Part shown: piece by piece, positions 19,690 through 63,073 of the stretch | Layout: each line of letters opens with the position of its first letter | Position numbering within the stretch: position 1 is the first letter of the stretch | Assembly: GCF_963921235.1 (NCBI RefSeq) | Contig: NC_086101.1 | Span: 30,194,001-30,258,000, forward strand | From: Mobula hypostoma | Lineage: Eukaryota | DNA: 64,000 bases | Reading direction: 5' to 3' | Program-made: the position numbers and the translations under genes | The notes under the pieces: model-generated | Told to the model about the DNA's origin: nothing | Databases searched by the model: none | The model's input: only the letters and a program-made list of their open reading frames with translations

Positions 19690-21251
19690 AACCCGAGCCA
19701 TCACTTAAGTAAATCCGTACACGAACTGAGACACTGAAGCATATACACAATGTGTTCCATGATATCGATTGAATCATTACAATCTGTGAGCGTACACTAA
19801 ATCTCTGGAAATTCTGCATAGATGTTACCAGCCAAAACAGAGTAAAACAGCTAGCGATAGAGACAAGTAATATGATCGAATTCCTGCGGTTTACATGCTG
19901 TGGACCATTGCAAGCTTCCCAAATTCCGTCTCCCCATGTCACTTCCTGATCTTATTGCCCCATAATATATGCTGGATGGTCAGAGCATTAAAGAGCACAG
20001 CCAATGAAAATGGCTCAAAAGTTGTTAAGGCGATGTCTAAAAGAAAGTATGCAATTTATGTTGGCAAACTATACGGATGAGACCACATTGCAAAACCAGA
20101 CAACATTGCGAATTAGTTCCCAAGTGTTCATTTTCAAAGTTAATTGGCATATTTTGTACGAAACTAAATCCAACTTTAATTATTATAACCACAGCTGCAG
20201 TTTCCTCAGCGTAATACTGTAAAGTGTTCTCAGGTTCTGTCAACAAATGGCATCAATCGATCACATGGAGCAATCTAAGGCTGAAAAATAGAGTGATCTT
20301 GAGGCTGCACATGGAAAACACACTATTTGTTGTGTATTTAATATTTTAGTTATTCTTGCGTAATCTCGAGTATATCATGGTGGATTAAGTTTTCCTGTTC
20401 GTTTAAATAATTCATTATGGATTATATGTATAAATACATTAATTGCATACGTCATCACGCTATTACCGGATATACGAGGGAACCACTTAAAGACGAAGTT
20501 GCACCCTCTTTTTTCGTACTCCTTTGTCTTCCTTTGAATTAGTTTAATGTTTTGAACTACAAAACATAACATCATTCACCTCATATAATATTACATCGTG
20601 TTGTTATCACCAGTCGATCTTCCACAGCCATTGCAACTGTAATGCCCTGGTTCATATTTCGTTACTGTTATGCTGCTCTGTATTTAATTTGTGCTGTTCA
20701 GTGCAAGCTGCTTGTTTGGGTTACTGTTGAAGATAAGAGATAGAAGAATTTAAGGTTGGTTTTGGGGCTTTTGTTATGGAGATGAAGAGAGAAGATGCCT
20801 GGGAGAAGAGGTCGTAGGGTTCGACCCGGAGCGGGGCTGTGATTCGACAAAGCCCGGGCTGAGATTGAAGGAGGATCGGCGAAGTGAAACCGTGAACTCC
20901 AATTTGGACACATTAGACTGTTTCATTAAAATGGGCCCTTTTCTTGTTTTGTTCTTTCGTTACTAAACCTTTAGTCAAATTAAGAAGTATAAAGCTTTTT
21001 TTAAAAAAAAAATTGTGTGGGGTGTACTGTCTGTTATTTTGTGATACTTATCTGTAACGGGGTAAGGAATCAGGCAGCATCCACACGAGCAGGGGTTTCT
21101 GGGGTGGGCTCGTGCCTCAATCTTACAGGTTTGGCGGGGCCAGACATTGTGTTCCCCAGATTTGCACAGCCGACGGAACCAGGGTGTTTCACAACCATAT
21201 AACGAGTGACTGCGCTTCCCACAAGAGGGAATAACAATTGCCGAAGGCTAT
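19690..21251 (-). pseudogene. GPR139-like class A GPCR exon-2 pseudogene, split by a solo LTR
   Basis: Minus-strand relics in order: acceptor ttttctgcatttacag, AIVI..CGKRS, VAMAVEDRLVI, LDCSM*, DAIC*QNLRT, YYAEETAAVVI, QNMP, WFCNV, LFNALTIQHIL, NRRNSIILLVSIASCFTLFWLV; matches the intact paralogues. Confidence 0.85.
20638..21191 (+). mobile_element. solo LTR of the 11857-14535 Gypsy family
   Basis: tgtaatgccct...gtgtttca, 4-bp TSD CAAC (20634-20637 and 21192-21195); shares internal blocks (gaagagagaagatgc, ctccaa, gcagcatccacac). Confidence 0.85.
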
Positions 21252-21911
21252 CTGTAAATGCAGAAAATCATAAATTGACTGTTTGAATACACAAGAATAA
21301 ATACCTCAGAGAAACCTTCGTTTAAAGCTTTTAGTCTAAGCCCCTCATACTTCGTTTAACATTCTTTTATTTGTATAAGGGAAGAAATTCATTTATGTCA
21401 AAAGTGGATTCAACGATTGTCAGCGGCCAATTTCACTTGGCGGTCCCTTTAATTTGCATGAAGATAAATCCATGTATCAAACTCAGGCAATATTGCCAAA
21501 TAATCAGCATTCTCGCAGGCGATTCAATGATCTGCCATCTTATTGAGGATTGGCTGCTAATTTATAATCATGACTTTAGAAAAGTATAAAGTACAGTATT
21601 GCGACGTTAACATCAACTTCTCTGGAACACTTCCCGAACATCACTTCGTTTGTTAGAATTAATAGCCAACTGCCTGTTATTTTTAATGAAACGAAAATAC
21701 TCTTCCTGTTGCAAATGCTCTTGTTCAGTACCGCAGTTCGAGGTTAAAACTACCCAGATGGTTCAAAATGCGCAAAAATCGAGCAATAAAACTTCTACTA
21801 AATCAGTAAACGAGGAAGCAACATTGTGAACAAGCTCTCTGGTTGCCTGACTGTGACGAGTTATATTCCTCAGAGCTTGGTGTATGTACAGACCGCTTCT
21901 TTTCACGTAAT

Positions 21912-24900
21912 ATGTCTCCAAGCCTCCCGGACGTCCACATCTGCGCCAGGTGCGCCGAGATGCAACTCCTAAGGGATCGCGTTAGGGAACTGCAGCTGCA
22001 GCTCGATGACCTTCGTCTGGTCAGGAAGAGTGAGGAGTTGATAGAGAGGAGTTACAGGCAGGTGGTCACTCCGGGGCCACGGCAGGTAGACAAGTGGGTC
22101 ACGGTTAGGAGGGGGAAGGGGAAGAGTCAGGTAATAGAGAGTACCCCGGTGGCTGGCCCCCTGACAATAGGTACTCCTGTTTGAGTACTGTTGGGAGGGG
22201 CGGCTTACCTGGGGCAAGCGACAGTGGCCGTGCCTCCTGCACAGAGTCCGGCCCTGAGCTCAGAAAGGTAGGGAAAGGAAGAGGAGGGCAGTTGTAATAG
22301 GGGACTCGATAGTAAGGGGGTCAGATAGGCGATTCTGTGGACGCGATCCAGAGACCCGTATGGTAGTTTGCCTCCATGATGCCAGGGTCCGGGATATTTC
22401 TGATCGCGACCAAGATATCCTGAAGTGGGAGGGTGAGGAGCCAGAGGTCGTGGTACATATAGGTAACAATGACATAGGTAGGAAAAGGGAAGAGGTCCTG
22501 AAAGGAGAATACAGGGAGTTAGGAAGGGAGTTGACAAAACGGACCGCAAAATTAGTAATCTCGGGATTACTGCCTGTGCCACGCGACAGTGAGAGTAGGA
22601 ATGCAACGAGGTGAAGGATAAATGTGTGGCTGAGGGATTGGAGCAGGGGGCAAGGATTCAAGTTTTTGGATCATTGGGATCTCTTTTGGTGCAGGTGTGA
22701 CCTGTACAAAAAGGACGGGTTACACTTGAATCCTAGGGGACCAATATCCTGGCGGGGAGATTTGCGAGGGCTACTGAGGTGACTTTAAAATAGAATGGTT
22801 GGGGGGTGGGAATCAAATTAAAGAGGCTAGGAAAGAGGAGGTTAGTTCACAACAGGGGAATGGGAACAAGTGCAGAGAGATAGAGGGGTGTAAAATGAGG
22901 GTAGAAGCAAAAAGTAGTAAGGTGAAAAGTAAAAGTGGCAGGCCGGCAAATCAAGGGCAAATATCAAAAAAGGCCACTTTTCAACATAATTGTATAAGGG
23001 CTAAGAGTGTTGTAAAAGCGAGCCTGAAGGTTTTGTGTGTCAATGCAAGGAACATTTGTAACAAGGTGGATGAATTAAAAGTGCAGATTGTTATTAATGA
23101 ATATGATATAGTTGGGATCACAGAGACATGGCTCCAGGGTGACCAAGGATGGGAGCTCAACATTCAGGGATATTCAATATTCAGGAGGGATAGACAAGAA
23201 AGAAAAGGAGGTGGGGTAGCATTGCTGGTTAGAGAGGAGATTAACATAATAGAAAGGAAAGACATTAGCCGGGAGGATATGGAATTGATATGGGTAGAGC
23301 TGCATAACACTAAGGGGCAGAAAACTCTGGTGGGAGTTGTGTACAGGCCACCTAACAGTAGTAGTGAGGTTGGGGGTGGTATTAAACAGGAAATTAGAAA
23401 TGCGTGCAATAAAGGAACAGCAGTCATAATGGGTGACTTCAATCTCCATATAGATTGGGTGAACCAAATTGGTAAGGGTCCTGAGGAAGAGGATTTCCTG
23501 GAATGTATGTGGGATGGTTTTTTGAACCAACATGTTGAGGAACCAACTAGAGAGCAGGCCATTCCAGACTGGGTATTGAGCAATGAGGAAGGGTTAATTA
23601 GCAATCTTGTCGTGAGAGGCCTCTTGGGTAAGAGTGACCATAATATGATGGAATTCTTTATTAAGATGGAGAATGACATCATTAATTCAGAAACAAAAGT
23701 TCTGAACTTAAAGAAGGGTAACTTTGAAGGTATGAGACGTGAATTAGCTAAGATAGACCGGCAAATGACACTTAAAGGGTTGACGGTGGATATGCAATGG
23801 CAAGCATTTAAAGATCGCATGGATGAACTACAACAATTATTTATCCCAGTTTGGCAAAAGAATAAATCAGTGAAGGTAGTGCACCCGTGGCTGAGAAGGG
23901 AAATTAGAGATAGTATCAATTCCAAAGAAGAAGCATACAAATTAGCCAGAAAAAGTGGCTCACCTGAGGACTGGGAGTAATTCAGAGTCCAGCAGAGGAG
24001 GACAAAGGGCTTAATTAGGAAAGGGAAAAAGGATTATGACAGAAAACTGGCAGGGAACATAAAAACTGACTGTAAAAGCTTTTATAGATATGTGAAAAGA
24101 AAAAGATTGGTTAAGACAAATGTAGCTCCCCAAAAGACAGGAACAGGTGAATTGATTATGGGGAGCAGGGACATGGCAGACCAATTGAATAATTACTTTG
24201 GTTCTGTCTTCAATAAGGAGGACATAAACAATCTTCCGGAAATAGTAGGGGACAGAGGGTCCAGTGAGATGGAGGAACTGAGGGAACTACATTTAGTAGG
24301 TAAGTGGTGTTAGGAAAATTGAAGGGATTAAAGGCAGATAAATCCCCAAGGCCAGATGGTCTGCATCCCAGAGTGTTTAAGGAGGTAGCCCAAGAAATAG
24401 TGGATGTATTAGTGATAATTTTTCAAAACTCTGTAGATTCTGGACTAGTTCCTAAGGATTGGACGGTGGCTGATGTAACCCCACTTTTTAAAAAAGGAGG
24501 GAGAGAGAAACCGGAGAATTATAGACTGGTTAGCCTAACATCGGTGGTGGGGAAAATGCTAGCGTCAGTTATCAAAGATGTGATAACAGCACATTTGGAA
24601 AGCGGTGAAATCATCGGACAAAGTCAGCATGGATTTGTGAAAGGAAAAACATGTCTGACGAATCTCATAGAATTTTTTGAGGATGTAACTAGTAGAGTGG
24701 ATAGGGGAGAACCAGTGGATGTGTTATATTTGGATTTTCAAAAGGCTTTTGACAAGGTCCCACACAGGAGATTAGTGTGCAAACTTAAAGCACACGGTAT
24801 TGGAGGTAAGGTATTGATGTGGATAGAGAATTGGTTGGCAGACAGGAAGCAAAGGGTGGGAATAAAAGGGACCTTTTCAGAATGGCAGGCAGTGACTAGT

Positions 24901-25931
24901 GGGGTACCGCAGGGCTCAGTGCTGGGACCCCAGTTGTTTACAATATATATTAATGACTTAGATGAGGGAATTAAATGCAGCATCTCCAAGTTTGCGGATG
25001 ACACAAAGCTGGGTGGCAGTGTTAGCTGTGAGGAGGATGCTAAGAGGATGCAGGGTGACTTGGATAAGTTAGATGAGTGGGCAAAGTCATGACAGATGCA
25101 ATTTAATGTGGATAAATGTGAGGCTATCCACTTTGGTGGCAAAAACAGGAAAACAGATTATTATGTGAATGGTGGCCGATTAGGAAAAGGGGAGGTGCAA
25201 CGAGACCTGGGTGTCCTTATACACCAGTCATTGAAAGTGGGCCTGCAGATACAGCAGGCAGTGAAAAAGGCGAATGGTATGCTGGGATTTATAGCGAGAG
25301 GATTCGAGTACAGGAGCAGGGAGGTACTACTGCAGTTGTACAAGGCCTTGGTGAGACCACACCTGGAGTATTGTGTGCAGTTTTGGTCCCCTAATCTGAG
25401 GAAAGACATCCTTGCCATAGAGGGAGTACAAAGAAGGTTCACCAGATTGATTCCTGGGATGTCAGGACTTTCATATGAAGAAAGACTGGATGAACTAGGC
25501 TTATATTCGTTGGAATTTAGAAGATTGACGGGGAATCTTATTGAAACGTATGAAATCCTAAAGGGATTGGACAGACTAGATACAGGAAGATTGTTCCCGA
25601 TGTTGGGGAAGTCCAGAACGAGGGGTCACAGTTTGAGGATAAAGGGGAAGCCTTTTAGGACCGAGATTAGGAAAAACCTCTTCGCACAGAGAGAGGTGAA
25701 TCTGTGGAATTCTCTGCCACAGGAAACAGTTGAGGCCAGTTCATTGGCTATATTTAAGAGGGAGTTAGATATGGCCCTTGTGGCTAAAGAGATCAGGGGG
25801 TATGGAGGGAAGGCTGGTACAGGGTTCTGAGTTGTATGATCAGCCATGATCATACAGAATGGCGGTGCAGGCTCGAAGGGCCGAATGGCCTTCTCCTGCG
25901 CCTATTTTCTACGTTTTCCATGTTTTCTATG
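21912..25931 (+). mobile_element. near-complete CR1 LINE (ORF1 zipper plus SGNH esterase; ORF2 APE-RT)
   Basis: CARCAEMQLLRDRVREL; EVVVHIGNNDIG; NARN..NK/GITETWL/YRPP/MGDFN/KSDHN; [31 protein letters not shown]; ttctatgt-type tail. Confidence 0.95.
22799..25830 (+). pseudogene. CR1 ORF2 (endonuclease plus reverse transcriptase), disrupted
   Basis: ORF-track pieces join with one stop at 23978-23980, one frameshift near 24290-24300 and one stop at 25090-25092. Confidence 0.9.
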
Positions 25932-25974
25932 TAATAATTTGGATGCTAGCATTGTGGCTTTATTACCAAGTTTC

Positions 25975-26560: not shown

Positions 26561-26801
26561 GTAAACAATAAGTCTTTGTTAAACGCAATTTAACAAACGC
26601 TGCTGGACAAAACGAATTTAAAGTACCGCATATGAAATCCCCCTTGACAACAACCGTATTATTTTATTTATTCCCTTAATCTGATTACATATCTATTCCT
26701 CACCGGAAATTACAAAACTAACATTGCACATGATCCTCATATATGTATTCACGTATGGTTGAATGACAATTATTCTTGAACTTAAACTTAATCAGCTATG
26801 A

Positions 26802-26855
26802 CAGGGGTCGCCAACCTTTTTGCCACTGCGGACCGGTTTAATATTGACAATATCA
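26802..26855 (+). mobile_element. hAT/Charlie-like terminal fragment
   Basis: caggggtcgccaacctttttg...gcggaccgg resembles a hAT terminal inverted repeat start; no partner TIR found. Confidence 0.45.
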
Positions 26856-26859
26856 TCGT

Positions 26860-27370: not shown

Positions 27371-27943
27371 CCATCTGCATTATCCTATGCATGCATCTGC
27401 AAACGAATATAAGCCTTATAAATAGTTCTCTTTTTTATATGCTTGTTTGTCGCTTTAGTGTGTTTTTCAAGGATAGCGTTTCTTAAACATATCTGAGAAA
27501 TTTTCAACGTGCGCCACAGTATTCGAGTGATTTATTTTTATTGCTGTTTTACATTATGTGATAAATTACGCTTCAGAACTTAGGTATTAGTGATACGTGG
27601 CAGACATAAAATACGGCGGAGAACAATACTTGGTACAACGAAAGTAAAACAAATGGCCTTTACTCCACAGATCATGCCGTGAAGGTATGTTCAACTAATA
27701 TTTGGATACACCATCAGTTCTCATCTGTTGTCAAATGAAAATGATGAAATACCTGTGTACAGTTTATCAATCTAACCGTGTTCATATGCTTACAGAAAAC
27801 ATTGCGCAACTGATGTATCATAGTAATCTCAATCTCGTATGTGACAATTCCCATTGGAAGGTCCTCTGAAACATAAGTAACAGCAAATTTAAAAATTGTG
27901 ATATTCGTGTAGTTGTTGGACTATACAGAAACATAGCTTCTTT

Positions 27944-30587
27944 ATGGTTATGGAAAAACATATAATCCAACAGATAAAAGCAATTTACTATCCAATGCTT
28001 GGCGCAATTGGGATTCCAGGTAAGTTGTTTATAAAAATGTATTTTAACATGCGTCACTTTCGACAGTATCAATCAACGACAAAACTGTCTATGAAAAAGA
28101 GTTTTTCAATTCCTTCGGAATACTACAGCTAACGCCATTCCGATATATAAATAACATTGACTGGCTATCATCAAAGAGTAAATGGTTCGGTAGTACTTTA
28201 TACTTTATACTTTATTGTCGCCAAACAATTGACACTAGAACGTACAATCATCACAGCGATATTTGATTAATATCGTTTCTAGGTAGTTTGAACACTGCAT
28301 TGAGAGAGCAAAATGAAAACATGTGAAAGTACTTATGAACGGACGAAATGATGTATTTCATTTTATTCATGTCCAAACTGCAACACGTTTCCGCTCCTAC
28401 AAGATAAGAGTCTGCTCTATGAAGGGCGGATTTCACGCTTCAAAGGAAGGATTGATTTAAGACTGCAGAATTTCGCACATTTTTCGTGTTTTCCTTAAAC
28501 GCCAGTGAATACTTTCTGCCTAAGGGAAAGTCAATATCCCGTGCCTAACTAATTATTGTGCGTAGCGTTAAGGTAGTTACTAATTTCAATTTCCAAAGTC
28601 ATGGTAGAAACTAACCTGTAAGGCGGTGATTCCCTTTTCATGTTAATACTCGGTACGCTCTATCTTAATCATGCAATGCAGCTGATCAATGCATACACCT
28701 GGCAGTAATTAATATTTTCAATTTGATGAAAACTGAGCTATTACTCAAAACAACTTTGTGATACTGGATAGATTTACATTGCAGTACTATTTGAAAAAGA
28801 TAGTAACATGAGCTCAACCGGTCAGATACAACGAAAACTTCCAACTAGGTGATAAGTTTAACAAACTGTGGAATTGCGACATTCTAACTATAATTACCTT
28901 TTAATATATACAAAATAAATGTATATTGGGATCACATGAAGCAAGGTTTTTCCACGTATATTCACATTTGCAAAGTGATTTGAGCACTTCATGTAAATAT
29001 TTATCAGAATGTAACAGATTCACTGGGACGATAGTTGAATAGATTTTAAGATGTCAGGATATTGTATTCACTTTTTGGTAATACATTAAAGTACACATTC
29101 CCCTTCGAGACTGGAAACCAATGTATTTCAAAAGATAACCACTCAGTCCATTCAAAACTGCATTGCCTTTATTCAGAAATAATTGATGGCAGTGGATTTC
29201 TGATATCTGGAGACAAAGTGCGATGCAATCATATTTTTAAAATAAATTCCAACACTGTTAAAAGAAAATGGATATCCCTAAGCCTGGTTAATATACAGTA
29301 TGTTTAGACAGACGGGAACACAGCAAACTGGGACTTCTTAAACCGAAGAAAATGTTGACAATATCGATTGGTGGGGGCGGGGGGAGAACAAATCTTTAAC
29401 ATTTGCTACGAAAATGATTTTTCCACGTTTTGTTGTTTTTTTAAGTGCACTGCACAGCCAATTGCGAATTTCGGATCTAGAACAAAATATGAGAATAAAT
29501 TACCCATCATTTTGGAATATTGTTTCAATGTTGTTGAAGTTAATTCATTAGCACTGACTCGGTAAAAATTAAAAATAAACACAACCGAAAAATTCTGACA
29601 ACCAAACGCACTAGATTCTCGACTGATTTGCGTTTCTAAAGTAATATATTTTCTTTGTTGGCAGCTAATTTGGTTGCAATTCTCATCCTGACATCCGGAA
29701 AATGCGGTCTCTCCAGATGCATCATCATGTACCTGGTATGGATGGCAGTAGCTGACCTCATGGTTTTGATAAGTAATGTAATGTTGAATGAACTGAAAGA
29801 AGCGTATTTTCCATATTCGTTCCTCAATTACACTCCTATTTGTAGTCTTATTATACAATTGATGTATATTACTCTTGATTTCTCTGTATGGTTAACTGTC
29901 GCTTTCACATTTGATCGATTTATTGCTATTTCCTGTCAGTCATTACGAACAAAATATTGTACTCCCAAAAATGCATCGAAGGTTATAGCAATCGTGTTTA
30001 TTTTCGGCATCATAGAAAATATTCCTATTTATTTTATATTTGAACCTCGGCGTATAATTAACCAGATGCCATGGTCATGTTTTATGAAAGCAAGTTTCTA
30101 CACCAGACCCTCCTGGATTGCGTACTTATGGATAGAAACAGCAATAACCCCATTTACACCGTATCTGTCCATTATTATTCTTAATTCTATAACCATAAAG
30201 AACATTGTAATGTCCAACAGAGTCAGAAGCAAACTACGAGCAAGTAACAAGGAGAGTTGTCAGAATGATCAAGAATCTGGTAACAGAAGGAAATCGATTA
30301 TTCTTCTAATTGCAATATCTGCCAATTTTGTTCTCTTATGGATGGTAAATCTGGCATGTTTCATTTACGTACAGTTTACAGACACCCAGTTTATGAAAAG
30401 AGATATGTTCAACTCTTTCGCAATTGCAGAAAATTCTGGCTACATGTTACGGTGCCTGAGCGCGTGTACAAACACCTTCATTTATGCAATATCTCAGAAA
30501 AAGTTTAGGGAGGAATTGAAGAATAAGATAAAATATGTACTTTTTTTCTGTACTGGTAACTTATGGGAGCGTTGTGTGGTTGTTTAG
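27944..30587 (+). CDS. GPR139/GPR142-like orphan class A GPCR, copy A (join 27944-28019, 29665-30587; 332 aa)
   Basis: Exon 1 MVMEKHIIQQIKAIYYPMLGAIGIP-G|gtaagt; acceptor ttttctttgttggcag|CT; 7 hydrophobic segments, PAN (N1.50), MAVAD, TM3 and ECL2 Cys, TFDRF, TM7 NTFIY, helix 8 KKFREEL. Confidence 0.9.
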
Positions 30588-31572: not shown

Positions 31573-33457
31573 TGTCATGGTCCGGTCCGTGATGTCCGCA
31601 TTCCGGTTCACGGTCCGGTCCGTGGACTCAGGACTCCGGGTTTTCCAGCTGTCCTTTGTTTTGGTTGGGTTAATCATAAGCACCTGATTCCCATGGCTTG
31701 GAAAATAAGTGGCCTTGGGGTCGGGTGTGGGCTGCTGGTTTGCCTTGTCAAGATTACCTGGGAGCAACATACCGGTGGAAGGCTAGAGCGGCGACCTGCC
31801 ATCTTTAGGCTGCGTCGGTAACCATCGCCTCATGGAGCCCTGCTATCAGTAGTCGGAGGTGTGTTTGCGGTATGGATTCGTCCGTTTCCTGGGTCAGCTG
31901 ACTGGCCGTCACCCACTCCGAGCTAGGTAGGGATTCGGCTGTTTCCGTAGCCAGCCGAGGTTGCTGGCCGTAACTGCGACTCGGAGCAACCCCAATGTGG
32001 AGATGGAACTGTCTGTCGTTCCTCGGTGTTTGTAGCTTCTTGTCTTCGCCTCCGTGGGTAAGTCAGACCGTTTCGCCGTTACCCAGCGGGGGGCGGGGTT
32101 TGGATCTGTCTTGTCTTGTCTTTGCCTCTGTTGGGTAAGGCCGGCCGTTCTGCCGTTACCCGACGGATGGGCCTGTCCCACCTTGGTGTCGTGTTAAAGA
32201 GGAGACCAGCTTTTCGTAGGATAAGTCCCGGCTCTATGTTTGATGTACAGTTCCCAGTCTGTCTCCGAGTTCCAGCTCAAAGTTATCAGCCTCCGCATTC
32301 CAAGGCCCCAGCTCCCAGCCTGCAGCCACAAGACGCAAGCCCCCAGCCTGCAGCCTCAAGACCCAAGACCCCAGCCTGTCTCCAAGCTCAGGCCTCAAGG
32401 CCCCAGCCTGTCTCCAAGCTCAGGCCTCAAGGCCCCAGCCTATCTCCAAGTTCAAGCCTCAGGACCGCAGCCTGTCTCCAAGCTCAAGCCTCAGGACCGC
32501 AGCCTGTCTCCAAGCTCAAGCCTCAGGACCGCAGCCTGTCTCCAAGCTCAAGCCTCAGGACCGCAGCCTGTCTCCAAGCTCAAGCCTCAGGACCGCAGCC
32601 TGTCTCCAAGCTCAAGCCTCAGGACCGCAGCCTGTCTCCAAGCTCAAGCCTCAGGACCGCAGCCTGTCTCCAAGCTCAAGCCTCAGGACCGCAGCCTGTC
32701 TCCAAGCTCAAGCCTCAGGACCGCAGCCTGTCTCCAAGCTCAAGCCTCAGGACCGCAGCCTGTCTCCAAGCTCAAGCCTCAGGACCGCAGCCTGTCTCCA
32801 AGCTCAAGCCTCAGGACCGCAGCCTGTCTCCAAGCTCAAGCCTCAGGACCGCAGCCTGTCTCCAAGCTCAAGCCTCAGGACCGCAGCCTGTCTCCAAGCT
32901 CAAGCCTCAGGACCGCAGCCTGTCTCCAAGCTCAAGCCTCAGGACCGCAGCCTGTCTCCAAGCTCAAGCCTCAGGACCGCAGCCTGTCTCCAAGCTCAAG
33001 CCTCAGGACCGCAGCCTGTCTCCAAGCTCAAGCCTCAGGACCGCAGCCTGTCTCCAAGCTCAAGCCTCAGGACCGCAGCCTGTCTCCAAGCTCAAGCCTC
33101 AGGACCGCAGCCTGTCTCCAAGCTCAAGCCTCAGGACCGCAGCCTGTCTCCAAGCTCAAGCCTCAGGACCGCAGCCTGTCTCCAAGCTCAAGCCTCAAGA
33201 CCCCATCCTCCCGTCCTGTAGTTAAGTCATGTCCTTGCCTGGTTCTGGGGCCCGAGCCCGAGGCAAGACCCAGGTTCTGGGTCCTTTTCCAGTCTCTGGC
33301 TTGGAGCCCAATCTAGGCACCTGGTTCATAGTTCCTTGTCCAGTTTCCCATTTTCTTGACCATGTCCTAGCCCAGGTCCTGCATCCTTGTCCTGGTCCTA
33401 GTACTTCAGTGTCTGTGTCTTACATCTGGTTCCGTTCCCCACGCCTCCACTGTGATA
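31573..33457 (+). mobile_element. LTR-like element (probable long solo LTR) containing a minisatellite
   Basis: Starts TGTCA, ends TGATA, 5-bp TSD CATAC (31568-31572 and 33458-33462); CpG/GC-rich; no second LTR or pol seen. Confidence 0.7.
32373..33204 (+). repeat. 32-bp minisatellite, 26 units (22 identical)
   Basis: Unit agcctgtctccaagctcaagcctcaggaccgc; identical units 32469-33172, three variant units before and one after. Confidence 0.97.
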
Positions 33458-46964: not shown

Positions 46965-48170
46965 AATGAATGAAGGTAGAGTGGTAGATATAGTGTGTAT
47001 TGAGCTCAGCAAGGCATTTGATAAGGTACCATATGCAAGGCTTATTGAAAAAGTAAGGAGGCATGGGATCCAAGGGGACCTTGCTTTGTGGATCCAGAAT
47101 TGGCTTGTTCACAGAAGGCAACGAGTGGTTGTAGACGGGTCATATTCTGCATGGAGGTTGGTGATCAGTGCTGTGCCTCAGGGGTCTGTTCTGGGGCCAC
47201 TTCTCTTTGTGATTTTTATAAATGACCTGGACGAGTAAGTGGAGGGGTGGATTAGTGAGTTTGCTTATGACACAAAGGTTGGGGTGTTGTGGATATTGTG
47301 GAGGGCTCTCAGAGATTACAGGGGGACATCGATAGGATGCAAAACTGGGCTGGGAAGTGGCAGATGGAGTTCAACCTAGATAAGAATGAGGTGGCTCATT
47401 TTGGAAGGTCAAATAGGATGGCAGAATATAGTATTAATGGCAAGCTCTAGGCAGTGTGGAAGATCAGGGTGATCTTGGAGTCCGAGTCCATAGGACACTC
47501 AAAGCTGCTGCGTAGTTTAACTGTGTGGTTAATTAGGCATACGGTACATTGGCCTTCATCAACCGTGAAATTGAGTTTAAGAGCCAAGGGGTAATGTCAC
47601 AGCTATTTGGGACCCTGATCAGACCACACTTGGAGTACTGTGCTCAGTTTTCGTCACCTCACTACGGGAAGGATGTGGAAAGTAGAGAAAAAGTCAGGAA
47701 ATATTTACAGGCATGTTGCTTGGACTGGGGAGCAGGCCTTATGAGAATGGGTTCAGTGAACTCGGCCTTTTCTCCTTGGAGCGGCGGAGGATGAGAAGTG
47801 ACCTGATGGAAGTTTATAAGATAATGAGAGGCATTGATCGTGTGGATAGTCAGAGGCTTTTTTCCCCAGGGCTGAAATAGCTGACATGATAGGGCATAGC
47901 TTTAAGGTGCTTGGAAGTAGGTACAGACGAGATGTCAGGGGTAAGTTTTTTTTTACGCAGAGTTGTGAGTGCGTGGAATTGGCTGCCAGCAACGGTGGTG
48001 GAGGCGGATACGATAGGGTCTTTTAAGATACTCCTGGATAGGTACATGGAGTTTAGAGATATAGAAGGCTATGTGTAAACTTAGGCAATTTCTAAATTAA
48101 GCACGTGTACTGCACAACATTGTGGGCCGAAGGGCCAGTATTGTGCTGTAGGTTTTTCTATGTTTCTACG
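46965..48170 (+). mobile_element. 5'-truncated CR1
   Basis: ORF 46966-47238 [14 protein letters not shown]...[20 protein letters not shown]; 3' tail ttttctatgtttcta. Confidence 0.88.
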
Positions 48171-50935: not shown

Positions 50936-51565
50936 AATGGAGGGAAGAAGTGCCTGTCCGACTTCTGTATTGTTGATGTTCATGCATAGTCAAGAATTTC
51001 ATGCCGAAGAAGAATAAATAAAATTCTATATGCCTTGTGACAATAAGCCTTGCATTATCTTTACATAAAAACAAACGGTTCCAATGAGAATATCCAGGAC
51101 AGAATCAGAACAGTAAAAATCTATTAACTTCGTAGAATTACAAAATTTCTGGCAAAATAACTGGAACGTATATTGAAATTGTATTTTAATTTTCTATGGG
51201 GGAGTATTTATTTCAAGAAACGACGTAGAAATAAACGCACAATGTACTTAATCAAAATAAATAAATGCGTTTCTGATTTCAACGAAAGTGTGAAAGCTGT
51301 CTTCTAATTCATATTTTATTTTATTTACTGGGAAGTTTGTGTAAAAACATTGATGACATAATGCACGACTATGGAAGCTAGCGCTGACGATTCAAAAAAC
51401 AAAACACGGATTCCCGGAGGGCTCACGGGACAGTATATCATACCGCAGTCATACTGCAGTGCTCAGAGCACAGTTCACGCTAACCTCAAATATAAATAAA
51501 ACACACACCGGAAAGCAAGATATCTTCTGCATTTGCCTCACAGAAAGCCGAACTTCTCTCCGATC

Positions 51566-54189
51566 ATGGGATCCTCTGTAACGTTAATCGTAGCACGCAT
51601 TTACAATCCTATTCTCGTAATAATTGGCGTCACCGGTAAGTCAATTTCACAACCTGCAAAGTATATTTAATTATACTTATCTTGATGACATAAATAACTA
51701 TCTAGAAAATGGCTGAACGTATTTACGGTTTCTGGTGTTTTAGAAATAAATATATTCTGCTAAATTCAAACATTGTGTGAGTCATTCATCATAATACACG
51801 CAGTTAAATTTTGTTCGTGTGCAGGCCGCATTTGCATTGGGTTGAGAAATAAACCCAAAAATGAGGGAACGACCTTGGAGATGCCTGAAAAGGAATGGAT
51901 ATTCTGGGATGCCCATTCGTCAAAATCGCCATATCGGCCTCGCCGGTATAGTACAAAGGAAAACGAACCAATACGTTAGGCGCAGGCTAGGCTACAAGAG
52001 CGGCTCGAAGGACGTTCAGTGACGTTCTACAGCCGTACGGGCTCCACACGGGATTTTAAGTCTGGGTTTACTTCTGTTGTTGACGTCTCTCCAAGGTTGC
52101 AAACAAAGCTGCGGCGCTATTTACCCATAAATGGGGATCTGGTTCACAAGCACTAGGCCTTGTCCACACGACGGTGGGCCCGTGTATTACGTGTGGAGGG
52201 GGCCAGACCTCCTCCCGTCCTCTGTAGTTAGACATATACTCATTCGCACGTGAGCATTACTGATTCAGGAGAGGCAACTGAATACTCTGAGTTGAGTGGG
52301 CCGTATACTTTTACGAGACCAATCGAATATCCAGCAGACAATGCATTCGTGTCAGAAAGCTCGGTCAAATTAAATGGTATTAACCAAAATTATATCTCTA
52401 AGTCAGTTTCCCTTTAAGTACCTTCGTAACTTATGTTAAGCACATTTTTTTCAGTTATTCAGATATATTTCGATAACGTCCACGTTATTAGAATCGATAC
52501 ATCACAAGCTAGCCGGATGATGCATATTACTTCATCAGTATGTGGTCACAGTAAAAATATTTTTCTCTGCGATGAGCATATCCAAAACATACTTACATGT
52601 ATATGGATATTTGAACAACATAAGACTTAGAAAAAAAATCAGAGAGGAATATTTCTTAACACAAATTATTTAGAACTGAAACGTCGCTTGATAAACTCAC
52701 AGCGTGTAAGATACGTTTGCTCATTCACTTGGAACTTGAAGGCACTGACGTCTGCGGCTCCTGTGTTGATGAACTAAATTAGTACAGTTAAGTGGAATGA
52801 TTACCTTGGAAATGGGACGAATTTATAACCTGCAGTTGTGCAGTCAGATTTATTGACTAGACGTTCGAGGTTTCTGGTGAGCAACATTGACAAGACAACC
52901 ATTTAGAAAGCTATTGGATCTTTCTGCCGAGATAATAGTACATGCAAATACAATATGAAGCTACACAAGCAATGTTCTCCGATTCCCTGAGACGTTGTCA
53001 CATGTTAACTTAATTTTATTCAACTCGGGGCATATTGTAGGTGGTTTGACAAAAAAAAAAGAAAATTAACACTTCAAATACAAAATACTGCTTTGTAAAT
53101 AACTGACATTTGCGAAAAACTGGAATGTTGGAAAACACTTCCTTTAAGTCAACATTCTAAATTGTATCTAATAAATTTAGCGAAGTGCGATGAATAGATG
53201 AGCAATGAAATAAACGCACACTAACTGCCATTCAACTTTCGAGTAACAGGACGATTTAATACATTTTCCTTTCTTCATTAACAGGTAATTTGGTATCTAT
53301 CTGCATCCTGTCTTCTGGAAGGTGTGGTCTATCAAGGTGTGTCACGCTGTATCTAGTATGGATGGCTGTTGCTAATCTAATGTATGTGATATTCGGCGGA
53401 ATACTTTATCGGATTAAGGACGCTTATTTTCCACGTTCATTTCTCAATTATACTCCTGCTTGCAGTATTAATTTGGCCTTAAATTTTGCTTCTATTGATT
53501 GTTCTGTCTGGCTAACTGTGGCATTCTCATTTGATCGATTCTTTGCGATTTGCTACCCGTCGTTACGGACAAAATATTGCACTGCAAAAAATGCAGCAAG
53601 GCTGTCAACGGTTATTTGTTCGTTATGCCTGTTAGAAAATCTTCCTTTGTACTTCATATTTGAACCCGTCGAAATAATTGACAGTGTGCCATGGTTCTGT
53701 AATATAAAACCAAGCTTCTACATCCTACCTGCTTGGGCTGCTTTCTTATGGTTGGAAGTAATAGTAACCCCATTTCTACCATTTGTGCTGATCCTCCTGT
53801 TCAACGCGCTAACAATAAGGCATATAATAGCGGTTAACAAAGTCAGAAGAAAACTTCAAAATGCAAGGAGTGCAAAGGGTCAAAAAGATCAAGAGATTGA
53901 AAACCGACGGAAATCAATAACTTTACTGCTCTCAATATCTGGAAGTTTCATTCTGTTGTGGGTGGTAAATTTTTCCACTTACATCTCTGTATATTTTACA
54001 GATAATAGATTGATGAAATCAGACAACTATGACGTTTTCACCATCGTGGAAAAGGTTGGCCATCAATTAAGGTTTTTAAGTACTTGCACCAACACCTTTA
54101 TTTATGCTATTTCGCAAAGCACCTTCAGAAAAGAATTGAAAAAAATAATTAAACAACCCTTTGGCTTTATTGCTAAAATCTTCAAGTAA
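51566..54189 (+). CDS. GPR139/GPR142-like orphan class A GPCR, copy B (join 51566-51635, 53285-54189; 324 aa)
   Basis: Exon 1 MGSSVTLIVARIYNPILVIIGVT-G|gtaagt; acceptor ttcctttcttcattaacag|GT; SFDRF, PWFC, NRRKSITLL, TNTFIY; same intron position and phase as copy A. Confidence 0.9.
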
Positions 54190-56909: not shown

Positions 56910-57152
56910 AGCATTCCTGTACAGGGGGAGGGGGAATGACGACTCAGAGCATGAGAGGCCTGCGTCGGGCATTTTCATGCCTTACAAGTCGCAGATTGGA
57001 AGTCTATATGGGGCGCCACTCCTCGCACAGACTAGAGCAATGTGTGATTAAGTGCCTTGCTCAAGGGCACAAACACGCCGCCACAGCTGAGGCTCGAACT
57101 AACGACCTTGAGATAACTAGGCGAACGCCTTAACCACTTGGACACGTGCCCA
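56910..57152 (-). mobile_element. tRNA-derived SINE (V-SINE-like)
   Basis: Minus strand gtgtccaagtggttaagg (A box), gttcgagcc (B box), gtgcccttgagcaaggcacttaatc. Confidence 0.8.
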
Positions 57153-58302
57153 ATACTCCTCTACAACGACTTCATTATTTATTGGCAGCATCACAAAGCT
57201 GTATAAACAAATTCAAATACTTTGTACATTCCATAAAGCATACTCTTGAATATTAAAAGTATTAATGATAGTCCCAAGTTCACTTTCCATACTACCTCCA
57301 TCCTTTCATTTCGAAAAGGATATTATGTGACTAAAAAGGAGCTGTGGCATGTACATTCAGATAGTTCTTGCCGAATTAACAATGAACAAATTGGCATACT
57401 ACCCCGGCCCTAAATTATTATTGTAATCCAGTTTCATTTGTGAATTTTCATTTGCAACTCCCGATAGCTCTAATAACGAAGTCTCATATTTGACAGTATC
57501 CCATTCACAGGAGACAACCCGTTTCAGAAACAGCTTGGGAGGTAGCTTTGACGTTCTTTCTTCCTAATTCCACTCAAAGATGTTGTCTAGCAGAGATTGA
57601 GCAGAGGTATCAAGGCATTCTTCCACCATATACGGTGTGCACTTTGTTTGCCATTTCCCAGCCTCATACAGAGAGGCTGAAGTTGCAAATGACTGAATTT
57701 GCAAGTGGCTACGAATTCAATGGGTACGCAACGAAGAAAAACAGGAGCAATATTTCAGGAAAAAGAATGTATTCATCACAGATGCCTCAGTGCTCTTAAC
57801 AGGCATGAAATGGTAAAATACAATACTTATATTATTGGCTGAATGCGGCCCACGTCGAGCACGATAGAACGTGTCTTTATATTCCGTTTTGTGGCGCAGA
57901 TTGGAGTAAGAAGTGGCCTGGAAGCAAAATGCGAAGGGAATTTGAAATGGCGTAAAACAAACCAATATTAATGAAGGAGGAAGGAACACAGAAAAGAAAT
58001 CAGGGGGAAAATGAAAGGAGAATGGAATATGCCGTGCTAGGTGGATCATAGAGAATCCCTATGAATTTTATGTTTATATTAAGAGAAAGACTAATTAGGT
58101 AACGATTTTATCCACTTAAAGACAGAGATGCGCGTGAACTTTGGTGAGAATAAAAAGTCGAAGCAGTGTTAATATTAAGCATAAGGAGCCGTCGGATACA
58201 TTGAAAAGTAATAAGGTCCATTAGAGACCAGGTCCTGAGAGATTCATGCCAGGATGCTGAGGAAGAAAGGGGGCAGACGGCATAGACAGAGAACTTTGAA
58301 TC

Positions 58303-59772
58303 CGCAAACAACAGGAATTCTGCAGATGCTGAAAATTCAAGCAACACACATCAAAATTGCTGGTGAACGCAGCAGGCCAGGCAGCATCTCTAGGAAGAGG
58401 TACAGTCGACGTTTCAGGCCGAGAGCCTTCGTCAGGACTAACTGAAGGAATAGTGAGTAAGAGATTTGAAAGTGGGAGGGGGAGGGGGAGATCCAAAATG
58501 ATAGGAGAAGACAGGAGGGGGAGGGATAGAGCCAAGAACTGGACAGGTGATAGGCAAAAGGGATACGAGAGGATCATGGGACAGGAGGTCCGGGAAGAAA
58601 GACGGGGGGGGGGTACCCAGAGGATGGGCAAGGGGTATATTCAGAGGGACAGAGGGAGAAAAAGGAGAGTGAGAGAAAGAATGTGTGTATAAACATAAAA
58701 AAAAACAGATGGGGTACGAGGGGGAGGTGGGGCATGAGCGGAAGTTAGAGAAGTCGATGTTCCTGTCATGAGGTTGGAGGCTACCCAGACGGAATATAAG
58801 GTGTTGTTCCCCAACCTGAGTGTGGCTTCATCTTTACAGTAGAGGAGGCCGTGGATAGACATGTTAGAATGGGAATGGGATGTGGAATTAAAATGTGTGG
58901 CCAATGGGAGATCCTGCTTTCTCTGGCGGGCAGAGCGCAGGTGTTCAGCAAAGCGGTATCCCAGTCTGCGTCGGGTCTCGCCAATATATAAAAGGCCACA
59001 TCGGGAGCACCGGACGCAGTATATCACTCCAGCCGACTCACAGGTGAAGTGTCACCTCACCTGGAAGGACTGTTTGGGGCCCTGAATGGTGGTAAGGGAG
59101 GAAATGTAAGGGCATGTGTAGCACTTGTTCTGCTTACAAGGATAAGTGCCTGGACGGAGATCAGTGGGGAGGGATGGGGGGGGGGGTGATGAATGGACAA
59201 GGGAGTCGCGTACGGAGTGATCCCTGCGGAAAGCGGGGGGGGGGGGGAAGAGAAAGATGTGCTTAGTGGTGGGATCCCGTTGGAGGTGGCAGAAGTTACG
59301 GAGAATAATATGTTGGACCCGGAGGCTGATGGGGTGGTAGGTGAGGACCAGGGGAACCCTATTCCTAGTCGGGTGGCGGGAGGATGGAGTGAGAGCAGAT
59401 GTACGTGAAATGGGGGAGATGCGTTTAAGAGCAGAGTTGATAGTGGAGGAAGGGAAGCCCCTTTCTTTATAAAAGGAGGACATCTCCCTCGTCCTAGAAT
59501 GAAAAGCCTCATCCTGAGAGAAGATGCGGCGGAGACAGAGGAATTGCGAGAAGGGGATGGCGTTTTTGCAAGAGACAGGGTGAGAAGAGGAGTAGTCCAG
59601 ATAACTGTGAGAGTCAGTAGGCTTATAATAGACATCAGTGGATAAGCTGTCTCCAGAGACAGAGACAGAAAGATGTAAAGGGGAGGGAGGTGTCGGAAAT
59701 GGACCAGGTAAACTTGAGGGCAGGGTGAAAGTTGGAGGCAAAATTAATAAATTCAAAGAGCTCTGCATGCGT
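58303..59772 (-). mobile_element. 5'-truncated Penelope-like element (RT thumb, GIY-YIG endonuclease, terminal repeat)
   Basis: TDVYYKPTDSHSYLDYSSSHP..K.AIPFSQFLCLRRI; IYCVRCSRCGLLYIGETRRRLGYRFAEHLRS...HF; frameshifted. Confidence 0.92.
58404..58439 (-). ncRNA. minimal type I hammerhead ribozyme motif in PLE 3' repeat (sense to the ORF)
   Basis: Minus strand agtc-CTGACGA-aggc(tctcg)gcct-GAAAC-GTC-gact. Confidence 0.82.
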
Positions 59773-59883
59773 ACAAAAACGAACAAACAATCAAGCAAAC
59801 GAGCAAAGTAACCAAAAAGCGCACTCCTTTCCGGATTCAATACAATTTGAAAGTGATTTTTTTTTGTTTTTTGTTTTTTGCAT

Positions 59884-60537
59884 CTAATTTGGTGGTAATT
59901 GTCATCCTGTCCTCTGGAAAATGCAGTCTCTCCATCTGCATCACCAAATATCTAGTATCGATGGCAGTAGCTGACTTAATGGTTATGCTAATTAATGTGA
60001 TGGTGAATGAACTGAAAGAGGCATTTTTTTCCATATTGATTCCTCAACTACACGCAGATTTGTAGCTCTATTGTCCTACTAATGTATATTTCTCTTGACT
60101 GCTCTGTCTGGCTTACTGTCGTTTTCACATTCGATCGATTTGTTGCTATTTCTTGCCAGTCGTTGCAGACAAAATATTGCACTCCTAAGATTGCCAAGAG
60201 GGTTATAGGAATCGTCGTTTTGTTAAGCGTCTTCGGAAATATTCCAATTTACTTTATATTTGAACCTCGAGGCATACTCAACCAGATGCCATGGTCCTGT
60301 TACGTAAAATCTAGTTTTAACACTTCACCCGCTTGGATCGTGTTCCTGTGGCTTGAAACAGCTTTAACCCCATTTACACCGTATGTCTCGATTTTTTTCT
60401 TAATTCCATGACCATAAAGAATATTGTAATATCCAACAGAGTGAGAAACAAATTACGAGGAAGCAACAAGGACAGTTGCTATAGTGATGAAGAGTTTGAT
60501 AACAGAAGGAACTCCATCATTTTGCTCATAGATAGAT
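59884..60537 (+). pseudogene. GPR139-like GPCR exon-2 pseudogene, close paralogue of copy A
   Basis: Acceptor mutated (ttttgcaT|ctaatttgg), frameshift/stop near 60030, deletion near 60390, truncated after NRRNSIILLI; exon 1 not found. Confidence 0.88.
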
Positions 60538-60539
60538 CT

Positions 60540-60910
60540 TTCAATTTTATTCTTCTGCCGTAGAGTGTTGGGCTTTGGGGTCTTTGAGCACGCGTGATTG
60601 CTAACTAATATTTTGATTGGATTTCTTAAGTACTTGTGTTTTCGGTTTGGTCTTGTTAAGTTAATTTTGTCTGGCACCTGTGCCGGGATTTTATCATTAT
60701 GTTAAGAGGACTCTCTGTCGGTGCCTGAGGTTGGTCATTATGTCGAAGGGAAGCTTTCATGGTATTCTCACTATGGTCGAAGATGATCAGTTTACCTTTT
60801 GGCGTCGATTAGTAGCTATTCCGAGGCTCTGATTCCGATTACGTCTGTGCTTTCCTGGTAATCCTGCCGTTCCTCCACACCTGGGTCCATCCTTCTGGTG
60901 TGCATAATGA
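60540..60910 (+). mobile_element. possible LTR fragment truncating the GPCR pseudogene
   Basis: Abrupt sequence switch at the truncation; ends cctccacacctgggtcc, similar in style to the U5-like end of 31573-33457. Confidence 0.3.
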
Positions 60911-61729
60911 GAGTTTCCAACTGAAATTTCGTATAGAGAGTCCTCATCAGTACTGGAAAGAGGAGGAGAGTGGTCATATTATGAAGGGATTAGGGAGAAG
61001 ACCACCAGATGGCACAGGATCGGTAGCACAGGCGAGAAAAATCTTACGTCGTCGTGGGGGAGAGTGATGATGTGAGAAACTGAAAGGTCGTCATGGAGTG
61101 ATAAGACTGAGTAAGAGTAAGATAATATTTGATGAAGTATATCTTCTAAAGATTGTGCGAATCTACTACGAAGATGTCACCAGTCTGCATTTAAATGCTC
61201 AATATTTTGTAGAATATGTTGACATCTTGATACGATGCACTAAATGAAATATTTAATACATTTCTGCTTTCCCCTAAAATGATATGATGAGTCCATTAAT
61301 ATGGGAATATATGAGACCGTGCTTTCATCCTCCGCAATTCCATGGGTGCGTGCTAAAATATTGAATTTGGTGGCCATACATTGAAGACCTGATGCGGGAG
61401 ACACAAATAAGCGGCCTCTCCTGGAAATGCAACTTTCACTGGATTACAGAAATGAGCTAAACAATCCAAACTAAGTTTATTATCAAAGAACATCGATGCG
61501 CAATTGTGCTATTTTGAGCTTCAATTTCTTGCGGGGATTCGTAGTAGTCACTGGAAAACAACATACAGATTAACAGACAAAAAAACATAAGGTACAAAAA
61601 GAGAAAGACGAATTGTGCAAATAGAAAATAATTATAGCAAATATGTAATGTATTGAAAATAAGAATAAATATTGCATAAAAAATAAACACAACAAAAATA
61701 AAAAAGAGATATTGATAAGCAAGTAGATA

Positions 61730-61841
61730 GAGAGGCAGATAGATAGATAGATAGTCAGATAGATACATGAATGACTTAATAAATAAATAGATAGACAAAT
61801 AGATAGATAAACAAACAAACGAACAAACAAACAAACAAACA
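61730..61841. repeat. compound (GATA/AATA/AAAC)n microsatellite
   Basis: agatagatagatagtcagatagatac...aaataaatagatagacaaatagatagataaacaaacaaacgaacaaacaaacaaac. Confidence 0.85.
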
Positions 61842-62249
61842 TTTCTGAAAACAAGTTTTGTAGAGCCCTTAACACTGAGACCTGAGATTAAAGAATTACT
61901 TCAGAGTTGAGATTACTCAGTCTGATTGTTGAATGCAAATAACTTTCTGAACCTGGTCTTGAGGAACCTAAGACCCCTCTACCTCGTTCCCTATGGCAAC
62001 AAAGACAGGAGAGTATGGACTGGATGGTATTATGTAATTTAACACAGCTGATTCACGTGGTCGTTGGTGTTAATTTGTCATGATACGTGAGGCCAGACAG
62101 AAAATATTCGGTGAGCCATTATCGTGACTTAACGTATAAAAATATTGACTTAATAGCCATATGAATAAGGAGTTTCTGCCTTCCTCTGGCCTTGCGTTTC
62201 ACTTGACTTTAAAACTCACACTGATTAAAGGTTTACCTTAAACTCCGCT

Positions 62250-62410
62250 GTCAGTAAGGAGTCTCTACGTTCTCCCAGTGACCGCGTGGGTGTCCTCAAA
62301 CATTTCCAAGATATACTGGTTAGTCGGATAATTAATAACGTGTGTGCACATGGACGGCTAAGGCTTGTTGGGCCGTACGGGACTGATACAGTGTTGTTTA
62401 TCTAAATTCT
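62250..62410 (+). mobile_element. HE1-like SINE fragment
   Basis: ggagtctctacgttctcccagtgaccgcgtgggtgtcctc...ccaagatatactggttag...gggccg...ataca resembles the elasmobranch tRNA-SINE body; degenerate. Confidence 0.5.
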
Positions 62411-63000
62411 ATATTAAAAATTAAACACTGTAATTCGCAGCTTTGCATATTTTCTAACAATTGCATTACATTTATTTTTGCATAACATTCTTCCTGCTCT
62501 GAATGGCAGTGATTTATTTTCTTTATTTCAATTCGTTTCGCAATCTAATTAGCTTATTCGTACAGTAACATTTCTAAGCATCTGAGTGTTTTTATTTCCA
62601 CCAAGTAGCTCCAAACCAGGTACAGATGTCTCAATTAGTATGCATTGAATAGTATACAGCATTTTAGTAGCAGCTTGGAAGACCTTTAGTTTAAGAAGAA
62701 TTGGAGCATTTATTTGATATAACATTGCAAAAAAAATGCATCCGATGATAATATTTTAATTCTTGAGTCATTAATTAATGAAACCAAAACTGGAAGCATA
62801 TTCTGCACACGCGTTCGTAACTATGTAAGTGGAAGTAAATAATATTACTGCCTTCTGTTTTATTGAATGATTACAGAACTTCAATTATCGTAGAGCGTTG
62901 ATGCCACTCAGGGGATTTCTAGTCGGTATAAATATATCTTAAGATGAAAGAAAGAGACCTAAGAATCTTCTGAACTCCTGGAAAACGTAGAGTTCCTCTG

Positions 63001-63073
63001 ATGATGGGAGAGCCAATAATCTTACAAATAGAAAATATTTATTATCCTATTTTTGCAATTATTGGCGTTCCTA
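63001..63073 (+). CDS. exon 1 of a further GPR139-like GPCR (rest beyond window)
   Basis: MMGEPIILQIENIYYPIFAIIGVP-A|gtaagt; same motif and phase-1 donor as copies A and B. Confidence 0.82.

Follow-up and report, generated by a model that had tools for sequence, protein, structure and literature searches.

A tandem array of GPR139-like receptor genes in the devil ray Mobula hypostoma: a putative ligand-diverse receptor repertoire of cartilaginous fishes

Introduction

GPR139 and GPR142 are G-protein-coupled receptors (GPCRs) activated by the aromatic amino acids L-Trp and L-Phe; GPR139 is found in the habenula, striatum, and hypothalamus and GPR142 in the pancreas and gut. GPR139 is described as a brain receptor encoded by two exons and 70% identical between human and zebrafish, with an agonist pocket made up of E3.32, F3.33, H5.43, W6.48, R6.51, and N7.38, of which Arg244 (6.51) and Glu108 (3.32) form the polar part (PMC7318219). 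In a 2019 Ensembl survey, an orphan named "GPR210" was proposed as a neighbor of GPR139 and GPR142; it occurs in the coelacanth, gar, and a small number of fishes (PMC6504862). In the current study, we analyzed a 64-kb stretch of the Mobula hypostoma genome (the window; contig NC_086101.1, positions 30,194,001 to 30,258,000 of assembly GCF_963921235.1), for which an initial annotation had proposed a birth-and-death array of GPR139-like orphan receptors.

Cartilaginous fishes are known for their keen chemical senses. They possess a handful of olfactory receptor (OR), TAAR, and ORA genes and about 30 V2Rs; the catshark, for example, has 2 canonical ORs, 3 TAARs, and about 32-35 V2Rs (PMC11979771). 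On balance, we think it probable that the window carries a tandem birth-and-death array of a chondrichthyan-specific class A receptor family, sister to GPR139 and GPR142, and that this family constitutes a ligand-diverse repertoire, likely for external or luminal chemicals. The family shows the traits that would be expected of a missing sensory repertoire: it is confined to one lineage, comprises dozens of genes per genome, lies in arrays with rapid turnover, and combines a hypervariable ligand pocket with a signaling face and a promoter that are conserved. In the literature we found neither a published description of this chondrichthyan expansion nor a report of the expression of its members. 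What is new here is that a devil ray pseudogene (psi4) is orthologous to a stingray gene that is still intact, that ancestral motifs can be told apart from the derived one, that teleost relatives share the intron, and that hypervariable positions coincide with the polar contacts of GPR139.

Results and Discussion

A tblastn search with the two long open reading frames (ORFs) of the window and five full-length homologues as queries revealed exactly five copies of the family: two intact genes (A and B), two pseudogenes (psi1 and psi4), and one copy (E) that runs off the end of the window. This is the composition that had been proposed, with five as a lower bound. The two long ORFs were the plus-strand frames with Pfam 7tm_1 matches in a six-frame ORF list (29655-30587, E 3e-16; 53290-54189, E 1.8e-18). 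Both genes consist of a short first exon (a leader of ca. 45 nt plus 70 coding nt), a phase-1 intron of ca. 1.6 kb, and one large exon. In gene A, coding exon 1 (27950-28019, plus strand; 23 codons plus 1 base) was located by tblastn with the N-termini of homologues, is 69% identical to red stingray protein P0001, and ends at the donor G/GTAAGT (the slash marking the exon boundary); exon 2 (29665-30587, plus strand), recognized as an ORF with a 7tm_1 match, begins at the acceptor GGCAG/CT and runs from N1.50 to the stop, giving an intact spliced product of 330 residues. Coding exon 1 of gene B (51566-51635, plus strand), found in the same way and with the same donor, joins exon 2 (53285-54189, plus strand; again an ORF with a 7tm_1 match) to encode an intact protein of 324 residues. 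The two products share 55% identity. Given that the window sequence contains no N and that the copies are clearly distinct, assembly error is not the explanation for the array.

The remaining copies are in various states. Copy E is represented by exon 1 (63004-63073, plus strand), found by tblastn with homologue N-termini (67% identity), which is followed by the donor A/GTAAGT and has a shark-type sequence resemblance; its exon 2 is expected beyond base 64000, given the ca. 1.6-kb introns of genes A and B. psi4 (59880-60557, plus strand; three-frame reading) carries frameshifts at about 60030 and 60402 and a single in-frame stop at about 60037, and its homology to gene A stops abruptly inside transmembrane helix (TM) 6, at about 60553-60557; blastn aligned it to gene A at 79% DNA identity over 687 bases, ending at 60553, and neither tblastn nor blastn detected an exon 1 for it in the window. 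psi1 (about 19638-20219, minus strand; tblastn) is an old, decayed pseudogene covering TM3 to TM7, with fragments scattered over three frames, many stops and shifts, and a TM7 reading CTDLLK followed by a stop, against CTNTFIY in the family. The array had been given a start at 19690; the array is real, but psi1 reaches about 530 bases past that coordinate, to about 20219.

The codon immediately before N1.50 is split in phase 1 in both genes (G+CT, Ala, in gene A; G+GT, Gly, in gene B), as had been claimed for every copy in which both exons are visible. The two introns are nearly equal in length (A, 28020-29664, 1645 nt; B, 51636-53284, 1649 nt), which is probably a coincidence; among A, B, psi4, and E, blastn found no intron or promoter similarity outside the exons. 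The same intron site, before Asn1.50, was found in a skate gene (L003; length, ca. 1.27 kb) and in two sevengill shark genes (L007 and L008), and probably also occurs in an elephant shark gene, which has an exon-1-like ORF 7 kb upstream of the acceptor. Beyond the cartilaginous fishes, an anchovy GPR139-like gene has the same site with phase 1 verified (G/GT...CAG/CC), and a silverside gene has a 147-nt intron at the same position. Because this split is shared by the skate, sevengill, anchovy, and silverside genes, the intron appears to be ancestral to the GPR139-like group. Many public gene models lack exon 1 and start at an intronic ATG (L007:9034-9103; P0044, P0050, P0061, P0080, P0098, and P0129), and the protein collection searched held no entry identical to gene A or gene B; the family is thus underannotated as well as misnamed.

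Genes A and B score 60.1 and 67.4 bits, respectively, against Pfam 7tm_1 (PF00001; curated cutoff, 30.5), and this general family was their only match in Pfam, with no chemoreceptor family model (OR, TAAR, V1R, or T2R) for either gene. An AlphaFold2 model of the gene A exon 2 product has seven helices plus helix 8 (mean predicted local distance difference test [pLDDT] score, 86.7). A search with gene A returned 1020 protein clusters (90% identity) at an E of ≤1e-5; among the best 120 of these matches, all named entries come from sharks, rays, and skates, the horn shark and the sevengill shark each contributing at least 26-27 distinct proteins and a sawshark and a skate 15 each. With more than 1000 clusters and every named member chondrichthyan, the proposed lineage expansion holds. 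Gene A is closest to red stingray protein P0001 (73-74% identity), and gene B reaches up to 63% identity to shark members. An exhaustive search of 50% identity clusters yielded 105 representatives at an E of ≤1e-30, and since the deepest branches among them span catshark, houndshark, skate, Atlantic stingray, and elephant shark, the family is chondrichthyan-wide. Beyond about 1e-32 come single coelacanth, salamander, and silverside genes (30-33% identity) and, further down, anchovy, amphioxus, and protostome receptors. In a maximum-likelihood (ML) tree of 100 rows, the chondrichthyan clade has a Shimodaira-Hasegawa-like approximate likelihood ratio test (SH-aLRT) support of 87, and its sister is a salamander gene (99); outside this clade are the coelacanth/teleost and amphioxus groups and the anchovy gene. 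Genes A and B both lie within a batoid subclade, gene B on another batoid branch than A. The family signature, taken from a 70-sequence consensus, is present in both: IYYP-x-L...G-x-P-A-N in TM1, NYTP-x-C in the first extracellular loop (ECL1), SIDCSVWLTVAFTFDRF, LLWMV, and CTNTFIY. Of the 104 alignment columns with ≥90% conservation across the 70 sequences, each gene also keeps 97.

When a 70-member family profile was compared with all PDB sequences, GPR139 came first (E 2.3e-18; 69.5 bits), followed by the prolactin-releasing peptide receptor (3.3e-12; 49.3 bits), and a coelacanth relative likewise prefers GPR139 (1.8e-18 versus 2e-10). A structure search with the gene A model returned many peptide-type class A receptors at about equal level and did not discriminate among families; the highest identity among these structural matches, 21-23%, belonged to GPR139 of human, mouse, and rat. 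Because the true GPR139 proteins of human and zebrafish share 70% identity, the ray genes are GPR139-like nearest kin rather than GPR139 itself. The original label "GPR139-like" therefore stands in the sense of closest solved relative but not in the sense of true GPR139 genes, and the family is best regarded as a probable distant sister lineage of GPR139 and GPR142, orthologous to neither. Among the traits shared with these two receptors are the two-exon gene (exon 1 of genes A and B having 70 coding nt), the TM1 motif G-(I/L)-P-A-N, the motif S-x-W-x-T-V with W3.41, an aromatic residue at 3.33, W6.48, and the proline-less N7.49-x-x-x-Y7.53. The differences are equally clear. GPR139 and GPR142 are single-copy and highly conserved, whereas the family has dozens of copies per genome; N1.50 is at about residue 44 in human GPR139 but at residue 25 here; and the family has DRF in place of DRY and has lost Pro6.50. 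Moreover, the polar ligand contacts 3.32 and 6.51 of GPR139 are hypervariable in the family, which retains only the aromatic 3.33 and W6.48 of the GPR139 agonist pocket; position 5.43 is Trp, and the position aligned with GPR139 N271 (7x38 there, 7.39 in the numbering used here) is Tyr.

These comparisons bear on the possibility that GPR139 itself was multiplied in cartilaginous fishes, so that the family members would be true co-orthologues of it. The NCBI label of most members is "probable G-protein coupled receptor 139," no PDB sequence matches better than GPR139, and both share the two-exon structure and the proline-less NxxxY. We nevertheless hold this to be exceedingly improbable: an identity of 21-23% stands against 70% for true GPR139 between human and zebrafish, the contacts E3.32, R6.51, and H5.43 are not retained, and the salamander, coelacanth, teleost, and amphioxus "GPR139-like" neighbors are themselves distant from human GPR139 (59-70 bits). 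The names of members also vary widely, others being called sex peptide, capa, vasopressin V2, galanin, NMU, or FMRFamide receptor-like; such inconsistency is expected of a family that has no close characterized relative. In effect, the databases conceal the family under a misleading "GPR139" label.

Closer in form are the low-copy GPR139-like orphans of coelacanth, gar, teleosts, and salamanders (P0220, P0223, P0225, and P0258), which are 30-33% identical to gene A and share the short N-terminus, the intron site before N1.50, and the proline-less NxxxY. They differ in having few copies and, in coelacanth and teleosts, ERF rather than DRF, and several retain Pro6.50 or lack W6.48. The coelacanth protein P0220 (32% identity to gene A) falls outside the chondrichthyan clade. 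Anchovy protein P0258, named "GPR139," was considered and rejected as a true GPR139, its score against human GPR139 being 59.5 bits. As a guess, GPR210 may correspond to the coelacanth and teleost relatives recovered in our searches.

The history of the array can be read most clearly from psi4. In the ML tree it pairs with the intact stingray P0001 (SH-aLRT 96; 83% identity), with gene A as sister to the pair (SH-aLRT 100). It follows that the duplication separating A from psi4 is older than the split between devil rays and whiptail stingrays and that the devil ray orthologue of P0001 has died since that split. The terminal branch of psi4 is about threefold longer than that of P0001 (0.15 versus 0.054), as expected if this is what loss of constraint looks like in the family. 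From the placements of psi4, A, B, and E, the array mixes paralogues of differing age and fate. Its mix of a dead psi4, whose stingray orthologue is intact, and an older paralogue, A, shows that the term birth-and-death array was well chosen.

For the living genes, Nei-Gojobori comparisons covered exon 2 of both intact copies and of one skate, two sevengill, and one chimaera gene. The ratio of nonsynonymous (dN) to synonymous (dS) substitution was 0.11-0.26 in all pairs with a computable dS, synonymous sites being saturated in most of them; the least saturated pair had a dS of 0.72, a dN of 0.19, and a ratio of 0.26. These ratios reject neutral evolution, the outcome that the initial annotation had named beforehand as speaking against its proposal. 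They also bear on the view that the copies are functionless products of segmental duplication in the course of decay. Two of the four assessable copies are indeed dead, retroelements fill the spacers, and A and B have no identical protein database entry. Set against this are the dN/dS ratios, the 97 of 104 conserved positions kept in A and in B, splice sites and promoters conserved from ray to chimaera, and the relaxed constraint that the branch of psi4 (0.15, against 0.054 for P0001) displays by contrast; this view, already disfavored, now seems very improbable.

Constraint is unevenly distributed along the receptors. Helix limits were taken from the model and positions numbered from N1.50, D2.50, R3.50, P5.50, W6.48, and N7.49. 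Identity between A and B is 48% on the extracellular side, 60% on the intracellular side, and 42% at canonical pocket positions, so the strong divergence in extracellular and TM residues noted at the outset is evident. When sites were partitioned crudely, the pairwise A-B dN/dS was 0.43 for the extracellular and 0.13 for the intracellular side. Across the family, column entropy averages 1.29 bits on the extracellular side versus 0.79 on the intracellular side (p 1e-8). A pocket set of 26 canonical class A ligand-contact positions has a mean of 1.52 bits, versus 0.79 for the other positions of TM2, 3, 5, 6, and 7 (p 6e-6) and 1.11 for the other helix positions of the extracellular half (p 0.011). 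Its peaks are 6.51 (2.75 bits) and 3.32 (2.64 bits), the positions of the polar GPR139 contacts, and among helix positions only 6.54 (2.92 bits) is higher. F/Y3.33, D3.37, W5.38, W5.43, W6.48, E7.35, and Y7.39, by contrast, are nearly fixed. In our reading, conserved aromatic and acidic residues form a core with a variable rim around it, a pattern that fits ligands with one chemical moiety in common. As for the diversifying repertoire that had been claimed, the higher variability of the pocket speaks for it, but dN/dS is below 1 in every partition.

It is also conceivable that the expansion produced internal receptors for neuropeptides or neuromodulators, acting in brain or endocrine tissue on endogenous ligands. 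The nearest relatives are GPR139 and the peptide receptors PrRPR, TRHR, CCKAR, and NTSR1, and purifying selection is fairly strong. We consider this unlikely, in that dozens to about a hundred paralogues per genome, pseudogene-rich arrays, and turnover between related rays would be unusual for receptors of endogenous ligands, and both the very short extracellular N-terminus and the hypervariable pocket contacts point the other way. Less likely again is a role as immune cell chemoattractant or metabolite sensors. The elephant shark member has a TRIM gene (RING and PRY/SPRY domains) about 7 kb downstream (L005, 17707-20927), and chemokine receptors are among the matches of the family profile; however, these score about 20 bits below GPR139, and gene neighborhood alone is weak evidence. 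Mammalian OR genes, for their part, also flank the MHC and T-cell receptor alpha loci. The elephant shark locus holds a second family fragment as well, at 7932-8102, about 2 kb upstream of the member.

Genes A and B have FDRF in TM3, LLWMVN (A) or LLWVVN (B) in TM6, and CTNTFIY in TM7, and with N1.50 at residue 25 their extracellular N-termini are under about 10 residues; the short N-termini, DRF, proline-less TM6 CWxP position, and NTFIY reported initially are thus all present in both. Of the class A microswitches, DRF, W6.48, N7.49, Y7.53, C3.25, and the cysteine of the second extracellular loop (ECL2) are present, and Pro6.50 and Pro7.50 are absent. More broadly, the conserved activation machinery comprises D3.49-R3.50, S3.39, V3.40, W3.41, P5.50, F6.44, W6.48, helix 8 (KFREE), and the C3.25-ECL2 Cys pair. 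The two missing prolines have different histories. N7.49xxxY7.53 lacks its proline throughout the wider group (human GPR139, NFFLY; amphioxus, NIFLY; anchovy, NFLLY; coelacanth, NMYLY; salamander, NMCIY), and GPR139 is a working Gq-coupled receptor; the proline-less motif is therefore an old trait. Pro6.50, on the other hand, is kept in GPR139 (LWAP), amphioxus (LLWLP), anchovy, salamander, and a deep-branching catshark member (LLWMP); in the large core clade to which genes A and B belong, Val takes its place. As judged from these sequences, its loss is the sole derived change among the noncanonical motifs and arose within the family. The noncanonical character originally ascribed to the receptors thus survives for Pro6.50 but not for NxxxY, which human GPR139 shares.

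Gene B has departures of its own: Asn for the near-invariant Asp2.50, a sodium-site residue; His for Tyr7.39; and Thr for the Pro of the TM1 motif G-x-P-A-N. Both proteins have a conserved N-glycosylation sequon, NYT, at residue 78 in ECL1, just before Cys3.25, and none in the short N-terminus; an ECL1 glycan may take the place of the usual N-terminal one.

Gene B, copy E, the skate and chimaera genes, and one sevengill gene each carry a TATAAA element 71-85 nt ahead of the ATG; at the corresponding site gene A has CATAAGT and the other sevengill gene TATAAGT. In gene A the putative core promoter (27849-27878, plus strand) consists of the box TCCCATTGGA at -101 and the TATA-like CATAAGT at -78 from the ATG, an offset shared with copy E, shark, skate, and chimaera. 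In gene B, TATAAA was read at -75 (51491-51496, plus strand). In copy E (62903-62932, plus strand), the box GCCACTCAGGGG lies at -101 and TATAAA at -77; copy E and both sevengill genes have GCCACT(C/T)(A/G)AGG ca. 12-14 nt upstream of the TATA element. At the same offset, the copy E promoter matches the two sevengill promoters at 24-25 of 33-34 bases, a score reached by 0-1 of 500 shuffles, the stretches having been aligned by eye on the TATA element, which somewhat inflates the scores. Since synonymous sites between these lineages are saturated, such conservation argues for a working core promoter shared from ray to chimaera. An Olf/EBF-like site was also considered: 4 of 7 promoters contain a match with one mismatch, but the positions vary and the matches depart from the consensus in a common way, and this candidate was set aside as too weak and post hoc.

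We favor a sensory role for the family on the strength of its evolutionary behavior, its kinship with amino acid sensors, and the shortage of ORs and TAARs in cartilaginous fishes. Genes A and B would be working G-protein-coupled receptors belonging to a ligand-diverse repertoire. The deep pocket formed by F/Y3.33, D3.37, W5.38, W5.43, W6.48, E7.35, and Y7.39 would hold a moiety common to the ligands, probably aromatic or cationic, like the aromatic amino acids that activate GPR139 and GPR142, and the hypervariable positions 2.57, 3.29, 3.32, 3.36, 5.39, 5.42, 5.46, 6.51, 7.36, and 7.43 would set the specificity of each paralogue. The likeliest use would be the detection of external or luminal chemicals in smell, taste, gut, or gill, and the repertoire could offset the very small OR and TAAR sets of these animals. 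The family resembles the OR, TAAR, V1R (ORA), and T2R families in its tandem arrays, many pseudogenes, lineage-specific turnover, short N-terminus, big copy number in one vertebrate lineage, and combination of a conserved signaling face with a variable ligand pocket; it differs in belonging to none of them by sequence.

Several observations weigh against this sensory interpretation. No partition, the pocket included, has a pairwise dN/dS above 1, which gives no sign of positive selection. Most GPCR families vary more on their extracellular than on their intracellular side. ORs and TAARs have intronless coding regions, whereas that of the family is split by an intron. The tree on which the family's position rests left out true GPR139 and GPR142. 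Short public (Logan) contigs that carry members were considered as mRNAs and rejected, their N-termini being intron read-through and the contigs therefore genomic; a literature search for their run accession returned no paper. Finally, the members are orphan receptors for which we infer a chemosensory role.

A bolder version of the chemoreceptor interpretation would make the family a seventh, hitherto unrecognized vertebrate chemoreceptor family, the main class A odorant or tastant repertoire of sharks, rays, and chimaeras, with one or a few receptors per sensory cell under the conserved TATA-plus-box promoter. It would account for small-molecule sensing in animals that nearly lack ORs and TAARs; this we put forward tentatively, as possible but rather doubtful. 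Even as an internal or immune set, the family would be among the largest uncharacterized GPCR expansions in vertebrates. For de-orphanization, the aromatic and acidic pocket core and the kinship with GPR139 and GPR142 provide a concrete starting class of ligands.

Other features of the window

A LINE-type retroelement with endonuclease/exonuclease/phosphatase and reverse transcriptase domains (Pfam), split into three ORFs, lies between psi1 and gene A (22799-25830, plus strand), and there is a further reverse transcriptase fragment at 46966-47238. A 32-bp minisatellite at 32355-33209 (26.7 copies; 98% matches) gives rise to spurious long proline-rich ORFs in two frames. Immediately upstream of psi4, long minus-strand ORFs at 58221-59840 have a retroelement-like look and no Pfam match; an insertion here may account for the missing exon 1 of psi4.

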